Source: Amphiscolops sp. MND2022 (Eukaryota). From it: a stretch of 64,000 nt of DNA. Shown here piece by piece: positions 49,921-61,000 of the stretch. The DNA lies in assembly GCA_964187785.1 (NCBI GenBank), contig OZ076416.1, forward strand, positions 35,960,001-36,024,000, read 5' to 3'. A program made the position numbers and the translations under genes. The notes under the pieces are model-generated. The model made no database searches. It was not told where the DNA came from and saw nothing but the letters and a program-made list of their open reading frames with translations. The number at the start of each line of letters is the position of its first letter. The first letter of the stretch is position 1.

Positions 49921-51493
49921 TTGAAAAAATGCAGCTGCGACATGCAGATGGCACATTCAAGGTAGTTCCTAAGCCATTTTTTCAGCCTGTTACTTTCCAC
50001 GCTGTTAGAATGGATACTGTCATTCTATTTTTCTATGCATTGCCCTCTTTCTTCGCTGGCGAAACTCTTACACCTGGTTGAAGTTCCAAATGGACAAATT
50101 TGTTTCCGCAATCGTTGTTGCAAATGCTGTGGGCATTCATCGCCAGGTCAAGTAGCATCAAGAGTGCGTTCGCAGATTAATAGTGCAAACTAAAATTTGA
50201 GACGAAGTAACAGATAGAAATCGACCCGGTCTCAAGGAAAGTTTCAAGGGGGCATACTTGCTGTATGAATGCTACCGCTCGATGCTAAGTGTTTTACTCC
50301 TGTTCGACATAGCTTAGCAAAACTACTGGCGCAAGAGGCAGTGGGACACTAGTAAAAGCGGTGGTGTGGTGTGGTCCAATACTCAGGCACATGGGAAACC
50401 CGAATCGTCTGAACAGAATATTGTCTCAATTAATCAGAAATCTCGAATCAACGTGAATGAGCTTTTCCAATAATCAGAACAATTTAGATGTTAATACTTC
50501 AGATACTATTCCTGGTCCCCATATATACCCTTTAGTACTTTTTTGAATATTGGGCCGCCTCTCGATCTTTACTAGCGCTCCGCCTTTTGAGATGCATCAA
50601 GATCTAATGTTCCAAAAATAAAACTTTTTGAATATGTGAAAGACGTGATTTTCGAGATGAATCTGTGGTCGACTACCGTCAGTTTACCTCAAATCTGATA
50701 AACAAAAGACTTCTTCATGTATTAGAAATTAGAAAAAATAACGTGTGATTAGTCCATAGTTTGTAGGGCTGTTGTTGACACTGCAAGTATGCTCTGGGGC
50801 CAACTAGTCTCTACAACAGACACACCCCGGCTTCTTTCACGGACAAGAAACTTTCACATTTTTCTGAATTTGTGTGCACATGGTCCATTGTTTCGAGTGC
50901 CAGTCAGATCTTGTGCATTATATTTATGGCTGTTGGATCCAGGGTCTGAAGAAAGCTTTGGTTTCAGATCTGGGTTGCTAGGAAATCGTTGTCAGTTAAT
51001 CATTCTAGCTATTAACTGACTTATTTACTTGGAAATTACTTCGAATTTTTTTCTGTTATGATGCGGACACAGTGATATCTGGTCTCGGGAAATTCGATTT
51101 GTGAAATGGTTTTTCTTCTGAAACTTTCCAAATTTTATTTTGTGAGTCTAGTTTTAAATTCGAAGTTCAATTCAATCAGGTTGTAAATTATAGTTTCAGA
51201 TTTTTTTTTCAATTTGGAATGAAAATCAGATCTTTTTCAATTTGGCATCAAAATCTTAACTGCTTGATATCGATAAGGGCTTCCCAGCGTCAGATAGTTT
51301 TCTGCAACATTTATTTAATGAATTGATTTAATAAATGAATCGATTTCCACCAAATAGGAGTTTCGAAGTGGAAAAAATAATGAGTATTCTCAATGTCCTA
51401 TAATTTTTTCCAAATCATTCTTTAAATCTCAGGGAATTGATTTTCTAAAATCTGACGCCAGTTTCAAAATGATTGTGATTTTTAGTTGCTATC

Positions 51494-52150
51494 ATGGAAG
51501 ACGGAAAAGTTATTACTGAGAAACCGCAGATTTTTGTCGAAAGGACTTTGGCTATTATTAAACCAGATGCCGTCAACAAATCCAGTGAAATTGAGGAAAT
51601 CATTCTCAGAGCTGGCTTCACCGTTCTCCAAAAACGACGGGTACATCTTACCCCCGAGCAAGCCAGTGACTTTTATGCCGAGCACTATGGCAAAATGTTT
51701 TTCCCGAGTTTAGTCGCCTTTATGTCGAGTGGACCCATCGTCGTGTACTCGCTTGGACGAGAGCATGCCATACAACATTGGAGAAAGCTGATTGGTCACA
51801 CGAAGCCAAAAACAGCGAAGGATTTGCAACCCGACAGTATCAGAGCCATATATGGAACCGACGATACTCGTAACGCTGTGCATGGCAGTGACTCGTTCAC
51901 TTCTGCCGAGCGTGAGATCCGATTCATGTTTCCAGAAGCCACTATCGAACCCATTCCGGCTGGCCAGTACGCCAAGGATTATCTGTCCAAAAATGTGAAT
52001 CCAGTTTTGTTGAAAGGGCTCACAGAACTGTGTAAAAATAAGCCAGCGGACCCTGTAACGTGGTTGGCTGACTGGTTGTTGGAAAATAACCCCAATAAAC
52101 CCAACGTCGACGAGCCCTTGACTCCGAAACAGCCCCCAATTCAAGTGTAA
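51494..52150 (+). CDS. NME5: Nucleoside diphosphate kinase homolog 5 (NDK domain + C-terminal Dpy-30 motif), single coding exon
   Basis: ERTLAIIKPDA, FYAEHYGKMFF, RAIYGTDDTRNAVHGSDS and VNPVLLKGLTELCKNKPADPVTWLADWLLENNPNKP; 218 aa. Confidence 0.95.
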   Translation: MEDGKVITEKPQIFVERTLAIIKPDAVNKSSEIEEIILRAGFTVLQKRRVHLTPEQASDFYAEHYGKMFFPSLVAFMSSGPIVVYSLGREHAIQHWRKLIGHTKPKTAKDLQPDSIRAIYGTDDTRNAVHGSDSFTSAEREIRFMFPEATIEPIPAGQYAKDYLSKNVNPVLLKGLTELCKNKPADPVTWLADWLLENNPNKPNVDEPLTPKQPPIQV

Positions 52151-52387: not shown

Positions 52388-52689
52388 TCAGCCTTTTTGC
52401 ATGGCTGCAGCTTTCATGAATTCTGAAACTCTCGTTTCATCCAAAGAATTCATCCAAATACCATTTTGTTTCAAACTCGAGCCCACTATCATCCCATCAG
52501 CTCTGTAGAACTCGGATAAGTTTTCCCGATCAACACCTGACCCAATTAAAATGGGCAGAGACGTTTTTGACTTCAGGGGACGAATAATTTGGGAATCTGT
52601 CGGCTCGCCTGTCATTTTGCCAGTGATTATGATTCCATCGGCCGCAAAAAATTCGGCAGCTTGTGCGTGGTCTTCGATTGTGAGATCAC
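52388..52689 (-). CDS. BtpA-like exon 4
   Basis: TTTCAAG acceptor, phase 1, ends TGA. Confidence 0.88.
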
Positions 52690-55600
52690 CTTGAAACAGT
52701 GTTTGAAATTGCATTTCGGAATCGCCCATTTTTGATCAATGAGTAATAATTCATATAATTTTTTAAAACGTATCATTTTAATTTTGTACAAAACAGGTTA
52801 TTTATGAGGTAGTTGGGGTTTCTTGTTATCATCGAACTTTGTTGTTGAAGGACGCGTAACTAACACATTATATTGTACTATGAGAGTTCTACTGTTATTT
52901 TGGAATCATGCGAAAGCAAACTTTGCCCCTTTATTTTTTTGTATTTTGAGATTTTTTCAGATTTTTCAATGCAGACATTATTTTTTAACTCATAATTTTC
53001 CATTGTTTGATATTCCTCGAATAATTTTTTTTCTGAAGCTGCATTTTTGGTTTTGATTTTAGTTTTAAATTTTATGGTCATGCCAAATATTCTCATATTT
53101 TTCAAAAAAATTCCGAATAAAAAATGCCCTAAAAGACGGGAACGCCATTTTTCATTTTTCTCCTTTTCTAAAAAAGAATCATAATAGTTGCATCTTCATA
53201 GGTAAGGGTCTTTTTAGTTGGCGTATTTTGTAAGAAATTGTGCCCGACTATTACTGTGACTAGATTTTTTCTCCAGACCACAGAGTTAACACTGAAAGGG
53301 GCGTCCCTGGTTGAAATTGCTTGAATTTTTTACATGTTTTTGTAGGTTACCAAGCTAATTTTCCATGATTTGATAAAATTCTCAAAGAAATGTCCATGTA
53401 TTAAAACTTCACTGATTCGATTTAATTTTATAAAGCTGCCTATAAAATGCATCCTAAATTTGGCGGCAATTTCGCGCCGCAAACTTTTACAGGTTTCATT
53501 AAGACGCCGTTCTAATTTTGAAAGCAGCTGAGACCGTTATCAATTTTACCGCGCTTTCAATGCAAATAAACTTCAGTCACATTATAAGTTTCAAAGTAGC
53601 GTCAATATTCAGCGTGCTATTTGACTAACGGTGATTACATAAGTACACAAGGAACTTACTTGAGAAACTTACGAGTGAAAATAAAGTGATCGCGGCGGTG
53701 AAGAATTGGAAATATTTTCAGTTCTAATTCAAATAGTGGCGGCTGCATTGTAACCCTACAAAATGTTTCCATGCAGGATCCTGGAATTTTCCATGTTTTG
53801 TAAAAAAATTAGCCTGCATGTTTCCATGCAGCATGTAAAAAGTTTAAGCAATCTCGACTAGGGGTTGTTACAGACCCTACGCCTAAGAACTAAGGCGTAC
53901 ACCATAATGTACACCAAAATGTACATAAGCTGCCAAAATGTAACCCCTTTGAATTTTTAATCGTTTTACCGTATCCTCAAAACTATATGGTACAAAATGT
54001 TCCGGCTTGGGGTTTTTCGTGCATTTGAGACTTATATGAGGAATTTTTAATATTTCACCAAAGGGTCCCCACTTCATTTTTTTGTTTTCGGTTTGGGTAA
54101 TAAGTTTTAGGATCCTAGATGGGCCCCTTCAGGCTTTTCGCCTTTGTGCAACTTTTATGCGGTTGGTTTTATTTATTTATTTGGTTTTTCTTGGAGATTT
54201 TCAGTTAGAGAAAAGCGTTTTGCGAGCACAAAAAGCTCCCTTTGGGTATTTTTGACACTCATCTTTTTGTGATATTTTACTTATAAATGCCCTGAGCGTA
54301 TTTCAAAAACTTTGTGCTTTTTGAACCTTTAGCGGGGCGCTGACTTTAGACGTTCTCGGTTTGTTGGAGTTTTTCTTATCGTACTCATGATATTTTTAAA
54401 ATCTTTAGCGGATTGTTCTTGGTATTTCTAATTTCCACTTTCTAATTTTTGACTTACTTGTTATGCTGTGGGATGAATGTTTCTTCTGTATGTCGCAATA
54501 AACCCTGATGTTCTGAGCTCCAATTCTGTTGCGATATCTCAACAGATCCCCCGCACAACTTTCTATATACCCCTCGTCTCCCAAATGCCCATAAACAAAT
54601 CCTAGTAGTGGATGGTCTTCTATAGACAAAGAAAAAGACGCCTTAATTTGTACGTCGAAAGAATGTTTCAGAAAAATTAGAAATGTATAAAATGGTTTAA
54701 GGTACGAGAATGAAAATCATAATGAAAGTTGCAAAAAAGCAAAAAAGCTTAGTTCGTCAATTTGATGCACTTTTAGGTCTTGAACTTTGAATTTAAAATT
54801 CTTGTGGAACGATCAAATGAAGCCAGGTTTTTATTCGAAGCGGCTTTTGCGATCGACTTTACGATTCAAAAAAGTTAAGTTTAGACATTTTAAATGACTG
54901 AATTAATCGAGTTTTGAATTTTAAAAAATTCAGCAAATTTAGCAAATTTACTCATCATCGCCCCTGCCTCGATGGTTGATTTTCTATCATATTTCCAAAA
55001 AAAATTATAATACTGTCGCAATCATTAAAACAGAAGAGTTTTGAGTGCGCACGGTCCATTGTTTCGAGTGCCAGTCAGATCTTGTGCACTATATTTATGG
55101 CTGTTTGATCCAGGTTCTGAAGAAAGTTTTGGTTTCAGATCTGGGTTGCTAGGAAATCGTTGTCAGTTAATCATTCTAGTTATTATCTAGAGATTTACTT
55201 GGAAATTACTTCGAATTTGAATTTTTAACAATTCAGCAAATTTGGCAAATTTACTCATCATCACCCCTGCCTTGATGGTTGATTTTCTATCATATTTCCA
55301 AAAAAAAATTAAAACTGTCGCAATCATTAAAACAGAAGACCATCCTTCTGCTCTTATGAAGTCGCAATCTGCAGCCAAGGCTATTGCAAGGGACTCCTTG
55401 TTGCCCCCGGTTAGGGTCTGAACCCCAACTTTAAAGTTTTCCTGCCTCGGTAAAATTTTCCTGACTTCGTGTGCTACCAAGGTCATAGTTGTTACAGTCT
55501 GGGGCTCTAATTTGCATGCTTTCAAGTAAGGCACATCATGCATGTTTTCCACGACCACACCAGAAAAGTTGTATTTTTTGTAGATTTCCGCCTCGGCCAA

Positions 55601-56107
55601 CGCTTGATCTATCGTTTTGCTGATGGGTTCACCCTAAAAACTTAGATGGTAAATTTCCCACTTTATCATCGACGTTGTTTTCGTCTTTAATGGAGGACAA
55701 AACACATTTCATACATACAAACTAGGATTTATCGAATACAATTTGACGGCCACAAAAATTAACCATTCAATATATTCGTTGCATATAATCCTTTGTTGCG
55801 GAATTTTGCTTTAAAACCTTTTGCTAAAGGTCCCACACAATTTGAAAAACCTGCATTGGACACCCGTCAAATAGAGCTACATCAGAATAGAATTTAGTGG
55901 GTTTGAAGTCGCTTTTGACTGTCAGAACATTTTCTTTCAAAATCTTTTCTGATTTCAATTTTTCCTCAAAATCTGAATGTTTATGTTACTGACAATATTT
56001 TGGTGAGTAGTACTAACTTTCCACAAAGGAGCCGCTGGAGTTGGTAGTAGATGAATCATGCCATATATGGCAGGTTTCCATTTTGTACACAGACGGGCTT
56101 GTATCAT
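52388..56107 (-). CDS. BtpA/SgcQ-family TIM-barrel protein, 274 aa; exons 56107-56018, 55633-55345, 54601-54458, 52689-52388
   Basis: Joined exons give GMIHL.PTP, VENMHDVPY, FIRAEGFV, DIQKKHS, ADGIIITG..TG, LIGSGV and GMIVGSSLK..G.W. Phases 0,1,1 are consistent; intron 2 has a GA donor. Confidence 0.88.
53305..53863. mobile_element. MITE with CCCT...AGGG termini in BtpA-like intron 3
   Basis: About 30-bp imperfect TIR (CCCTGGTTGAAATTGCTTGAATTTTTTACATG vs CCCTAGTCGAGATTGCTTAAACTTTTTACATG), GT on both flanks. Confidence 0.65.
54458..54601 (-). CDS. BtpA-like exon 3
   Basis: TAG acceptor, GTAAGT donor; GFVYGHLGDEG...DIQKKHSSHSIT. Confidence 0.88.
55345..55633 (-). CDS. BtpA-like exon 2
   Basis: TTTTTAG acceptor; GEPISKTIDQALAEAE...DFIRAE(G); non-canonical donor inferred. 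Confidence 0.85.
56018..56107 (-). CDS. BtpA-like exon 1
   Basis: MIQARLCTKWKPAIYGMIHLLPTPAAPLWK, GTTAGT donor. Confidence 0.75.
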
Positions 56108-57968: not shown

Positions 57969-58064
57969 ATGCCGACCGCGGTACCCCCATCGTCCGCAAA
58001 ATCCAGGGTGAAAGTCCCACCCAAAAACCCTAAAGTGGTCAAGCAACTACTGGAAAAACGCCCG
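57969..58064 (+). CDS. HYDIN: HYDIN coding exon 1
   Basis: MPTAVPPSSAKSRVKVPPKNPKVVKQLLEKRP, GT donor. Confidence 0.7.
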
Positions 58065-61000
58065 GTTGGTGTTCTCTAGAATTTTGTTTCTGATGTTAAA
58101 AGACTCTGGAAATAAGTTGACCTTATGAATTTTCGCTGTAACCTGTGAATATTTGTCTATTTTCAGTACCTGCCTTCTGAGTATCTGAAGATAGCGAAAC
58201 AAAATACCGAGGAAAAGCGAGATGACATCACTGAGATCAGAGTACCCAGGGTTCTGGAGCTTCTGGACATCAGGGACCAGGGAAACCAACTTGTAAGACC
58301 ATCATCGAACATCTTTCATGATACATTCAAAAGAAGCAAAATCCTTTTATCAGTGAAGAATGGAATAATTAGGGGTCCCAAACAAGTAAATTTTGAAATT
58401 CCAGTCGAGTGAGTCAGTCGCAAAGCCAGGATTAGCTAACCGGTTAATCGAATACAGTTTAACTTCAGTATTACACACCTCGTTGGGAGAAAACGCTCAA
58501 GTATGTTATTCTGAAGTGTGTGTTATAAGCGAAAAAGACCAAATGATGAAATCCAAACACGGGGGCACAAAATATGTGCGTTATTCTGAAGGTTACACTA
58601 TAGTGCACGTGTGTGATACTGAAGTTGAACTGTAATCGGTTTGTAATTCGTGTACCTGTTGGAAAAATTTAATCAGTTAACTGATAAAGCTGTGTAAAGT
58701 CAGATTTAAACCCTGGCAACTATAGTGGATGCCCTCAATAATAAAGAATGAAATGAGTTTTCCAAGGTTCTACACGTAAATTATAAAAACTAGTTACTAT
58801 TTGCTAACAAATCTCAGAAATTTTGGTCGTAGGTTTTAAATTAAAAACCACGGAATTTGTTTTGTTTTTGATGGAATAATGTCTGAATTTTAATAGGACA
58901 TCATCCAAAATCGTTGTTCTGAAGTACACTCAACTCCGCTTATAACGATTGCCCGGGTCCAGCGTTTTTAATAGTTATATCCGAATATCGTTGTAGGCGA
59001 AAATTGTTATATACTAGCATCGTGGCCGTGAAACTTTATCGCTATAACCGGAATATCGTTATAAACGGAGTTGAGTGTATTTGAGATATCTTATCGGTTA
59101 ACCGATTAACCGGTTAATTTTAACGATTAATTGGTTAAGCAAAAATCCTAACTGGCACAAGCTCTAGTTGTTGGAGAAAAACGTAAGTTCCATTCAAACT
59201 CATATTGAATGAAAATACAAAGGAGTGTTTTGGTCTGTTTTTACTGACTGAGATCTTGTTTCAGAATTGCGGGGTGCCTCTAGATGAACCCATTTTCCAA
59301 CCTTTTCCCAGCGAAATAATATTCCAGAAATTCGAACCGTGCAAAGTGTATGAGCAGAGTTTACAGGTTAGCTTTCACTCGATAAATTCGAACGCGGTTG
59401 CAATCCTGAAAATCATTAACTTCATCAAGTGAAACTTCACTAGTTTTTCGAAATTAGACTCTCAAAGTAAACTCAGTTGTTGCTCGATTTTTTAAAAAAA
59501 ATTTAAAACAAAAACTACAAGAATTCAAGTGAACAGAGTTGAATATTTGCTACTCCATAAGATCTGAAGACTAGTTGTTAGACTTGAACTTCTTACCCGT
59601 TACTTTTTCTGGCGGTCTTGCATGTATACCCCTAGAACCCGCTCTCTTTCCTCTTTAAGTGGCGCTAAAGAAAAAATAATATGTTTGGGTTTCTTGCATG
59701 GAAGAAAATTTAGCCAGAGTTCAATTTTCATGTGCCTGAGGTTCAAATAACTATATTTTGAAGTGATAGGAATCAACTATCGTTGTATCTACATTGTGGA
59801 CGAATGGCACAAAACGTAAATGAGCGACCCTATTGTTTTATACTTTCATAACAGTTACACAATGACATGGATTCCTTCAAAAAGCAAATTTTTATACGCG
59901 GGCAAGCTAGATTCGAACCCTGTCATCCTGATTGGGAGGTATACTCAATATCGTTTTGGTAATACTCTGCAGTATCCATTACAGTCTGTTCGTTCTATCC
60001 GAGACCGCCGACTAAGAACTACCGCAAAACTTTTATGTTCGTAGTGCAGGGTATTGGAAAAATTTTCAGAGTTTTATTCAATACCTCGCAGAACAGATAT
60101 GGAATATTTCATTGGATACTCCTTTGAATATTAAATTCCTCATGTACTTGAGGAATACCCTAGGTATCTCGATCCGTTTTAAGGCGAGTTTGTTGTACTA
60201 TTTTTTGTATTTTTTCTCTTTCTCTTTACCCCTTGCTATCCGATCTCTGAGTGATCTTGCTGACGAATGATCTTTGAAAGAATGACGATTAATTTCATTT
60301 TGTTGTTTTCTGTAGCTTCGCAACAACGATCAAAATGCCAGACTTGTCAAAGTGACTCATGAGAGCTCTGCCTACTTCACAATTGTCCCCCCAAAGAACC
60401 CTGGTGACAAGATTGCCCCCGGAATGGCTTGCACCTTCAAAATTCAGTTTCTACCCGAAGAACGGAAAGTACGTCATGGTCTCCTTTTTTGTCACACCAA
60501 AGACTTTTTCGGCATACATCGGAAATTTACTATCCATCAGCTCAGTTGATCGAAAGATTCTTTCTATGATCAGCAAAGGACTTCCCGTAGGGGTCGTTGA
60601 AAACTGCTGTTTTGTTGTTTTCTGAAAGAACAGGGTTTCGAATAAAAGTATTTTCACTTTTTGTGTAGATTTGAACAGTTCGAAAGTCGAACAATTTCAA
60701 GAGTTTTATCCCTTTTTCACTGAGTTTTTTCAAATTCAGTTGTGCTTATAAGAGATTGTAGATGCGCTAAATTACGTAACAGCCACGCACGGCATTTTAT
60801 CTCAAAATGTTTCGAATCATTCTTTTGCAACCAAAAACGTGTCATTCAGGACAATAATATATTACAGTAAATGAATTTATCTGGTATCAATTAAAGTGAA
60901 CAACTTGGACAACAATGAGTTCGGTCTAATCTAAAAGCTTTGAAGATGACCCCAGAAAGACCGTAAAAACCTTCAATTTTTGGCTTAGATCTATACCACG

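Follow-up and report, generated by a model that had tools for sequence, protein, structure and literature searches.

Probable splicing of a BtpA-family gene at a GA donor

Few signals in eukaryotic genes are as constant as the GT at the start of an intron, and the locus described here raises the question of whether a working nuclear gene can be spliced at a donor that lacks it. The locus lies in a window of 64,000 nucleotides from Amphiscolops sp. MND2022 (assembly GCA_964187785.1, contig OZ076416.1, positions 35,960,001 to 36,024,000). The minus strand of this window carries a four-exon gene of the BtpA family, and its second intron, 743 nt in length (55344-54602), starts with GATGGT and ends with CACTACTAG (...CTACTAG). 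On balance, we consider this element to be a genuine nuclear intron of a functional single-copy gene, in a lineage that tolerates donors other than GT, with a helix between the intron ends probably helping its removal. The features of the gene are given below in window coordinates; the relative is a second species, known from a metagenome contig, which is described in the following section.

56018..56107, minus strand: exon 1, from ATG to ...PLWK, taken from the gene model; relative's peptide 90% identical; GT donor GTTAGT
55634..56017, minus strand: intron 1, GT-AG (GTTAGT...TTTTAG), used as a control; terminal duplex of only -8.2 kcal/mol; position common to Convolutriloba and Symsagittifera
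55345..55633, minus strand: exon 2, ending ...DCDFIRAE plus G; PF03437 positions 24-109, E = 4.7e-14; 78% identical to the relative's open reading frame (ORF) P0001
54602..55344, minus strand: intron 2, 743 nt, GA...AG, phase 1; the sole junction restoring FIRAEG/FVYGH and the sole one common with the relative
54458..54601, minus strand: exon 3, FVYGHLGDEG...HSIT; Pfam positions 116-155; relative's peptide 81% identical
52690..54457, minus strand: intron 3, GT-AG, used as a control; very high-copy repeat at about 53255-53880; terminal duplex of -6.2 kcal/mol
52388..52689, minus strand: exon 4, to the stop codon; Pfam positions 169-253, E = 5e-20

The spliced model comprised 274 codons with zero stops, and its exons 2, 3 and 4 matched the Pfam family PF03437 at the positions listed, which placed the gene in the BtpA family; the gene was found to be single-copy in the assembled genome. 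As evident from the profile alignment, residue 95 of exon 2 corresponded to BtpA position 109 and residue 5 of exon 3 to position 116, with neither a gap nor an overlap at the junction. The motif FIRAEGFV(Y/F) aligned without a single indel with ten homologues, which ranged from acoels to a crinoid, and both animal and bacterial members were included in the alignment. No retrocopy or paralogue recording the spliced BtpA junction was found in the assembled genome. A search of RNA runs returned none that covers the locus, and no transcript-derived copy turned up in the protein collections.

The junction of intron 2 can slide over the shared letters AGGAT, which gives the cuts AG..CT, GG..TA, GA..AG, AT..GG, TG..GA and GG..AT. 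All six equivalent cuts were non-canonical, with none being GT-AG, GC-AG or AT-AC. Within reach of the junction, every frame-open GT-AG, GC-AG or AT-AC pair deleted or replaced the motif, and none was present in both species. Nested (twin) introns and the GT at +5 as the true donor were also considered and rejected, as each scheme left a frameshift or a stop and the relative has an immediate in-frame TAG. The original prediction had held that only the removal of 55344-54602 restores FIRAEG/FV, that no slide of the junction is canonical, and that the other introns called are GT-AG; the contiguous Pfam positions, the indel-free alignment, the broken motif in every alternative and the borders of introns 1 and 3 all agreed with these claims.

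Short-read contigs from four runs covered both intron ends and showed A at 55343, with no alternative letter at a frequency of 10% or more. The four runs represent one sample, so they exclude an assembly slip but not a private allele. Excision at the DNA level was rejected, as the joined 55345/54601 form was absent from the DNA contigs of the four runs.

The intron did not fit the U12 type: the donor reads GATGGTCT (or, when slid, ATGGTCTT), in contrast to the required /RTATCCTT. No branch site resembling TCCTTAAC was present 10-15 nt before the acceptor in this species or in the relative. A search for U12 snRNA revealed no match among the 43 candidates scored out of approximately 88,000, with controls that were uninformative.

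The orthologous intron in a related species

A search with the 96-residue exon 2 revealed a 122-residue ORF (L003/L027) that was 78% identical and ended exactly after FIRAEG. This ORF lies on a 152-kb contig of a metagenome assembly in the European Nucleotide Archive (ENA), and the same contig carries, in the gene order of the window, NME5 (96% identical) and the beginning of HYDIN. In the relative, exon 2 ends with GCAGAAG and the intron begins with GATAG, with the TAG in frame; a stop codon right at the intron start makes a downstream donor impossible. The relative's intron was 1645 nt long and ended with CCTTCAAG (CTTCAAG) before GATTTG, in the same phase and also as GA...AG. Both species thus have a donor of G followed by a purine, with the borders GAAG/GATGGT...CTAG/G in Amphiscolops and GAAG/GATAGA...CAAG/G in the relative.

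Over the 274 codons of BtpA, dS was 1.6, dN was 0.13 and dN/dS was 0.083, and the interiors of introns 1 and 2 had nothing detectable in common between the two species. Neutral sites are therefore saturated at this distance, and GA was kept throughout. The gene is a working one under purifying selection in both lineages, which implies that an intron starting with GA must be cut out precisely in both. No tRNA was found in the relative's intron. Further relatives were also sought: a protein search with the relative's exon returned just short, distant fragments, and two scans of JGI metagenome contigs yielded one GC-rich bacterial chance match.

A predicted helix between the two ends of the intron

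The 12-mer GGATGGTCTTCT (55345-55334) was found to be the exact reverse complement of 54621-54610 (AGAAGACCATCC), and 8 nt separate the 3' arm from exon 3. This pairing was the central observation of the original prediction, and its letters and coordinates were verified. The two arms are as follows.

55334..55345, minus strand: 5' arm GGATGGTCTTCT, comprising exon base -1 and intron bases +1 to +11; includes the GA and a putative decoy GT at +5/+6
54610..54621, minus strand: 3' arm AGAAGACCATCC, intron bases -20 to -9; opens with the AG of a cryptic in-frame acceptor, TCTATAG

With RNAduplex, the helix extended to 14 bp by the addition of one G-U and one A-U pair, with an energy of -24.1 kcal/mol. 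This energy was reached by 3 of 4000 random 743-nt pseudo-introns of this genome (P = 0.00075) and by none of 2000 shuffles, and in the whole-intron ensemble each of the 12 pairs had a pair probability of 0.82. The terminal duplexes of GT-AG introns in BtpA and neighbouring genes ranged from -4.5 to -14.0 kcal/mol. We also observed that the upstream acceptor TCTATAG stands directly behind the only good pyrimidine tract at the end of intron 2; judging from its letters, this cryptic acceptor may act as a decoy.

In the relative, AAGGGTCTTTC (+7 to +17) paired with GAAAGAGCCTT (-15 to -5) over 10 of 11 bp, with an energy of -13.9 kcal/mol. The two helices share several properties: the 5' arm holds GGTCTT in both species, the arms lie at most 6 nt from the 5' splice site and at most 8 nt from the 3' splice site, and in each case 8 to 10 bases stay unpaired between the splice sites, with the closest GT downstream enclosed in the helix. 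When the helices were compared from their inner ends, six pairs were identical, four were changed on both sides yet still paired, and two were lost.

Non-GT introns among dynein heavy-chain genes

To place the BtpA intron in its genome, we used our own intron sample, consisting of the AAA1 domain (PF12774) of 15 dynein heavy-chain paralogues with 79 exon matches. For each junction, the spliced peptide between fixed anchors was aligned to paralogues without an intron at that place, and only these fixed-anchor results were used. The method was validated by the finding that the unconstrained best junction was mostly the GT-AG one. Left out were paralogue g07, the low-scoring junctions g10 h267 and g05 h269, the junction g06 h78, which lacked a candidate or reference, the g12 junction between profile positions 119 and 143, for which the exon was not found, and two further paralogues.

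This procedure yielded 43 evaluable introns, of which 37 were GT-AG and six were non-GT. The latter comprised one GG-AG, two GC-AG, two GA-AG (one of them weakly supported) and one that reads as CT-AG or GC-TA. Their coordinates (G000) are as follows.

C6:66020625-66022933, the GG-AG intron, whose removal restores the P-loop GPAGTGKT
C1:36781783-36782129
C11:1727242-1726784
C11:6167176-6165237
C1:15528581-15529855
C7:65116615-65115866

Together with the GG-AG intron of Symsagittifera described below, these six of 43 introns indicated that non-GT donors are frequent in this genome or its lineage. The mean energy of the terminal duplex was -11.7 kcal/mol for the non-GT introns, in comparison with -8.6 kcal/mol for the GT introns (Mann-Whitney P = 0.004; 43 introns). 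The original prediction had suggested a genome-wide survey of non-GT donors for terminal complementarity; at the scale of the 43 dynein introns, rather than of the whole genome, stronger pairing was indeed found. In addition, the donor had the form G-N-ATG(T) in three of the six non-GT dynein introns, and the BtpA donor, when slid by one base, also reads GGATG. The U6 ACAGAG box pairs best with the yeast-type donor GUAUGU, and G-N-ATG(T) corresponds to GUAUGU without its U.

Paralogue g07 (G000 C2:30139851-30144316) behaved differently from the remaining sample: three of its junctions fit no G...AG solution, and arbitrary borders scored far better. This paralogue may be a broken copy, or small exons may be missing.

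Age and distribution of the intron

The closest named BtpA proteins were those of Convolutriloba macropyga (59% identity) and Symsagittifera roscoffensis (54%), with which the Amphiscolops protein has lineage-specific residues in common, and in S. roscoffensis BtpA also stands head-to-head with HYDIN. By these likenesses the host genome appears to be that of an acoel. Intron positions in other species were obtained by mapping annotated proteins onto their loci. Convolutriloba and Symsagittifera both contain introns 1 and 3 and have none at FIRAEG/FV; instead, an intron lies 20 codons upstream. The bryozoan gene has no intron at FIRAEG/FV and has one 7 codons upstream, while another animal has a GT intron 3 nt upstream of the site. 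For the crinoid orthologue, the middle exons were not recovered. The GA intron is specific to the clade of Amphiscolops and the relative, since it is absent in the convolutids and the bryozoan, and its presence in both species makes it older than their split.

We also found a second unusual intron in this gene. The RefSeq BtpA model of S. roscoffensis requires a species-specific 226-nt intron that is readable only as GG-AG (CAG/GGCTCT...AACAG).

L043:3756-3981 (OY783240.1): Symsagittifera roscoffensis GG-AG intron, with a 5-nt AACAG repeat over its borders

Splicing machinery

The U6 genes of the assembled genome contained the standard ACAGAGA box, and the 5' end of U1 was the standard ATACTTACCTG in most copies. 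Three U1 copies (G000 loci L016, L022 and L023) had the 5' end ATACTAACCTG. Judging from base pairing, this variant would pair with T at +3, a base that intron 2 has in its GAT and that the GTTAGT donors, which are frequent, have as well, and T was the commonest +3 base among the GT donors here (16 of 37). Another three copies (L010, L017 and L024), which belong to three different U1 subfamilies, had the 5' end ATATTTAAACCTG and were all preceded by ttgaa. A compensating U1 variant was considered as a candidate and rejected, as no U1 copy had U at position 7.

A proposed structure-assisted donor and the evidence for and against it

Our interpretation is that intron 2 would have been gained after the split from Convolutidae and before the split from the metagenome relative, and that its non-GT donor would have been kept since then. 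The ordinary major spliceosome would presumably remove it, in a lineage that appears to tolerate any base at the second intron position, given that approximately 1 in 7 sampled introns lacked GT. The helix may bring the weak donor and the acceptor together, with only 8 to 10 unpaired bases left between them, and it may at the same time bury two decoys: one is the GT at +5, and the other is the upstream AG at 54621-54620, which looks the better acceptor. We consider it rather probable that the end helix assists splicing in these two ways, by joining the sites and by hiding the decoy GT and AG.

Several observations weigh against this interpretation. The splicing as drawn is a prediction from DNA, and the exact cut is ambiguous: with a cut one or two bases away within AGGAT, the borders would be GG..TA, for instance, in place of GA..AG. 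In Amphiscolops the helix covers the very donor, so that standard models predict hindered binding of U1, and no U1 copy was changed so as to pair with A at +2. Moreover, a local donor hairpin, in which the end of exon 2 pairs with the intronic TCTTCTG, has an energy equal to that of the long-range helix and competes with it. The relative's helix was marginal (P = 0.054 with pseudo-introns, 0.018 with shuffles and 0.04-0.065 with interior windows), and one of 17 GT-AG control introns had a helix as strong; in a comparison of only two species, the seemingly compensatory changes carry no information past the presence of a helix in both. The S. roscoffensis GG-AG intron had no significant end helix (P = 0.18), and the helices of the six dynein non-GT introns were modest, at -10 to -14 kcal/mol, which indicated that end pairing is not a strict requirement. 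The view of the original prediction that end pairing may define or regulate the splice site is thus suggestive only, with the weaker helix of the relative and the stronger pairing of non-GT introns in its favor and the intron of Symsagittifera against it.

A wider proposal, which we put forward tentatively and regard as possible rather than probable, is that acoels recognise about one-seventh of their introns without the GT rule. In such a scheme, the donor would keep its first G, often within a G-N-A-U-G-U core that fits U6, and an end helix would define or protect the sites and be selected over the long term while its sequence and the remainder of the intron turn over, as seen in the BtpA intron and its orthologue. 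This would amount to a structure-assisted, transposon-independent definition of introns in a bilaterian.

Alternative explanations

The likeliest of the alternatives is that intron 2 is the relic of an introner, in which a small DNA transposon with inverted ends hit the exon, so that the pairing would be a decaying terminal inverted repeat, the odd borders would derive from the insertion site, and the helix would have no function. The original prediction had offered this origin while noting that no target site duplication was seen. The combination of a 12-nt inverted repeat and a 5-nt direct repeat over the borders is the anatomy of Amoebophrya introners (PMC7789003) and also matches that of Fritillaria (preprint 10.1101/2025.08.15.670264), and intron 2 is lineage-specific. 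A terminal inverted repeat is present as well, although one of its bases is exonic and it ends 8 nt short of the intron's 3' end. However, no target duplication stands beside the arms, as the flanks GCAGAA and ACTACTAG differ, which bore out the absence of a duplication that had been noted, and the 5-nt border repeat AGGAT is no longer than those of GT-AG introns in related genes, which allow 3 to 7 slide options. No further copy of the intron ends or body was found in 1.07 Gb, where only a 180-nt internal segment recurred. High-copy families could escape the genome DNA search, which passes over very common words, but read depth over the intron was only about 1.7x that of the flanks, an excess attributable to the internal duplicate. 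In addition, the intron predates a split at dS 1.6 and its interior has fully turned over, by which time a neutral 12/12 repeat should have decayed, and the helix takes in the last base of exon 2 (-1) together with the splice site's conserved GAT. An introner relic is therefore an unlikely explanation, and this part of the original prediction is not supported for this intron; a transposon origin in the distant past is conceivable, but the intron bears no sign of one.

The body of the intron was examined for repeats in the same context, and the following features were found.

55216..55339, minus strand: copy A of a young direct repeat of 125 nt, which begins 5 nt past the donor; identity with copy B, 94%
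55038..55215, minus strand: segment U, lying between the two copies; identity of 93% with window 50869-51048, 4 kb away
54913..55037, minus strand: copy B of the 125-nt direct repeat, from its comparison with copy A

The 178-nt segment occurred only twice in the genome, upstream of NME5 (50869-51048) and in intron 2, and it has the appearance of a templated insertion flanked by a long duplication. The repeats in the intron body are the result of recent reshuffling and represent no transposon family.

The remaining alternatives accept less of the intron as drawn. The GA donor could be joined to the upstream acceptor TCTATAG, so that the exon would start at 54619 and gain six in-frame residues, EDHPLL, either constantly or as an isoform switched by the helix. 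This AG follows the only good pyrimidine tract in the same phase, the helix covers it, and the donor hairpin of equal energy makes two conformations conceivable; nevertheless, no homologue has an insertion there and the relative has no equivalent in-frame upstream acceptor, and we regard such a product as improbable. Still less probable is a change at the RNA level before splicing, for example editing of the A at +2 to inosine within the end helix so that the spliceosome reads GG. The A at 55343 does lie midway in a perfect 12-14 bp duplex, and GG donors are seemingly accepted in this lineage, but the relative's GA is outside its helix, the helix is short for an ADAR substrate, and the result would still not be GT. 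The least credible alternative is an error of sequencing or assembly, or a defective allele, with GT as the true donor or with the gene being a pseudogene. The original prediction had argued that the A is no sequencing error, and it had named a pseudogene as one of the outcomes that would overturn it. An error and a defective gene are both largely refuted by the A in the contigs of four runs with no alternative at 10% or more, by the GA of the relative, and by a single-copy gene whose four exons are intact in both species at a dN/dS of 0.083.

Comparison with other systems and significance

To our knowledge, animals that break the GT rule at scale are known only from one copepod and larvacean tunicates, and our search of the literature found no account of at-scale non-GT donors in acoels. 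Introns with GA or GG donors have been described in the copepod Eurytemora affinis and the tunicate Oikopleura dioica (Robertson 2017, PMC5714493; Frey and Pucker 2020, PMC7072748). The introns described here resemble these in having a G-purine donor after an exonic AG, a normal AG acceptor and standard spliceosomal RNAs, and also in that such introns make up around a tenth of all introns and are concentrated in lineage-specific, recent gains. In contrast, the +3 base of intron 2 is T in both species rather than the published A, the phylum is acoel-like, end pairing is not described in those animals, and GC and CT starts occur here alongside GA and GG. As the host genome is acoel-like, the comparison with tunicates is one of analogy only.

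Complementary intron ends have been reported elsewhere. In Fritillaria borealis, as summarised in a preprint (10.1101/2025.08.15.670264), over 90% of introns depart from GT/AG; they do so at both ends, which are formed by the inverted repeats of transposon families that can be recognised. The likeness lies in non-GT introns with complementary ends and a conserved U1 5' end, with those of Fritillaria being removed by the major spliceosome; the BtpA intron differs in that its acceptor stays AG, its first base is G, it is old, and it shows no detectable transposon family. The inverted repeats of Amoebophrya introners measure 8-20 nt, and the direct repeats over their borders 3-5 nt (PMC7789003). 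These introners are similar to intron 2 in that an inverted repeat joins the intron ends and a direct repeat at the borders makes the cut ambiguous, but they belong to a protist, have no preferred end dinucleotides and form repeated families, whereas the present intron is a unique animal intron that keeps G...AG. An efficiently used GA donor is also found in human FGFR1-3, where, according to Brackenridge et al. 2003 as cited in PMC7072748, it is alternative and needs a canonical GT six bases upstream; intron 2 has no such upstream GT, and its site would be constitutive by necessity.

The proposed role of the helix has its closest counterpart in budding yeast. Self-pairing of yeast introns, as studied by Goguel and Rosbash in 1993, Libri et al. 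in 1995 and Meyer et al. in 2011, reportedly shortens the effective distance between splicing signals or hides decoy AGs. The BtpA helix would act similarly if it joins the reactive sites and masks the competing ones. Unlike intron 2, however, the yeast introns have canonical GT-AG borders, and their stems link the donor to the branch region and not to the last 20 nt.

The BtpA intron provides a clean test case, as it combines a single-copy gene under selection, a donor that no slide can rescue, an orthologue at a saturated distance and a helix that is very unlikely to arise by chance. If it is confirmed by RNA, the annotation of acoel genomes, which bear on early bilaterian evolution, would need to allow for non-GT donors, and tolerance of such donors would have arisen at least three times in animals. 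It would also become possible to ask by experiment whether RNA structure can replace a splice-site letter.

Neighbouring genes and other observations

The gene HYDIN (window 57969-59368, plus strand, onward) stands head-to-head with BtpA. Its first three introns had GT donors in both this species and the relative, with GTTGGT being kept at the first, and the one junction examined in AASS was also GT. A search of the region at 50-60 kb of the window revealed no Rfam families. The very high-copy repeat within intron 3 of BtpA was evident from a summed contig depth of approximately 500,000 at window 53255-53880, compared with 60-85 in the flanks.

Two genes were found to be intronless, namely NME5, with its NDK and Dpy-30 domains (window 51494-52150, plus strand), and phosphoglycerate kinase (PGK; G000 C5:18142715-18143905). 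These observations fit an intron-poor lineage that also gained new introns.

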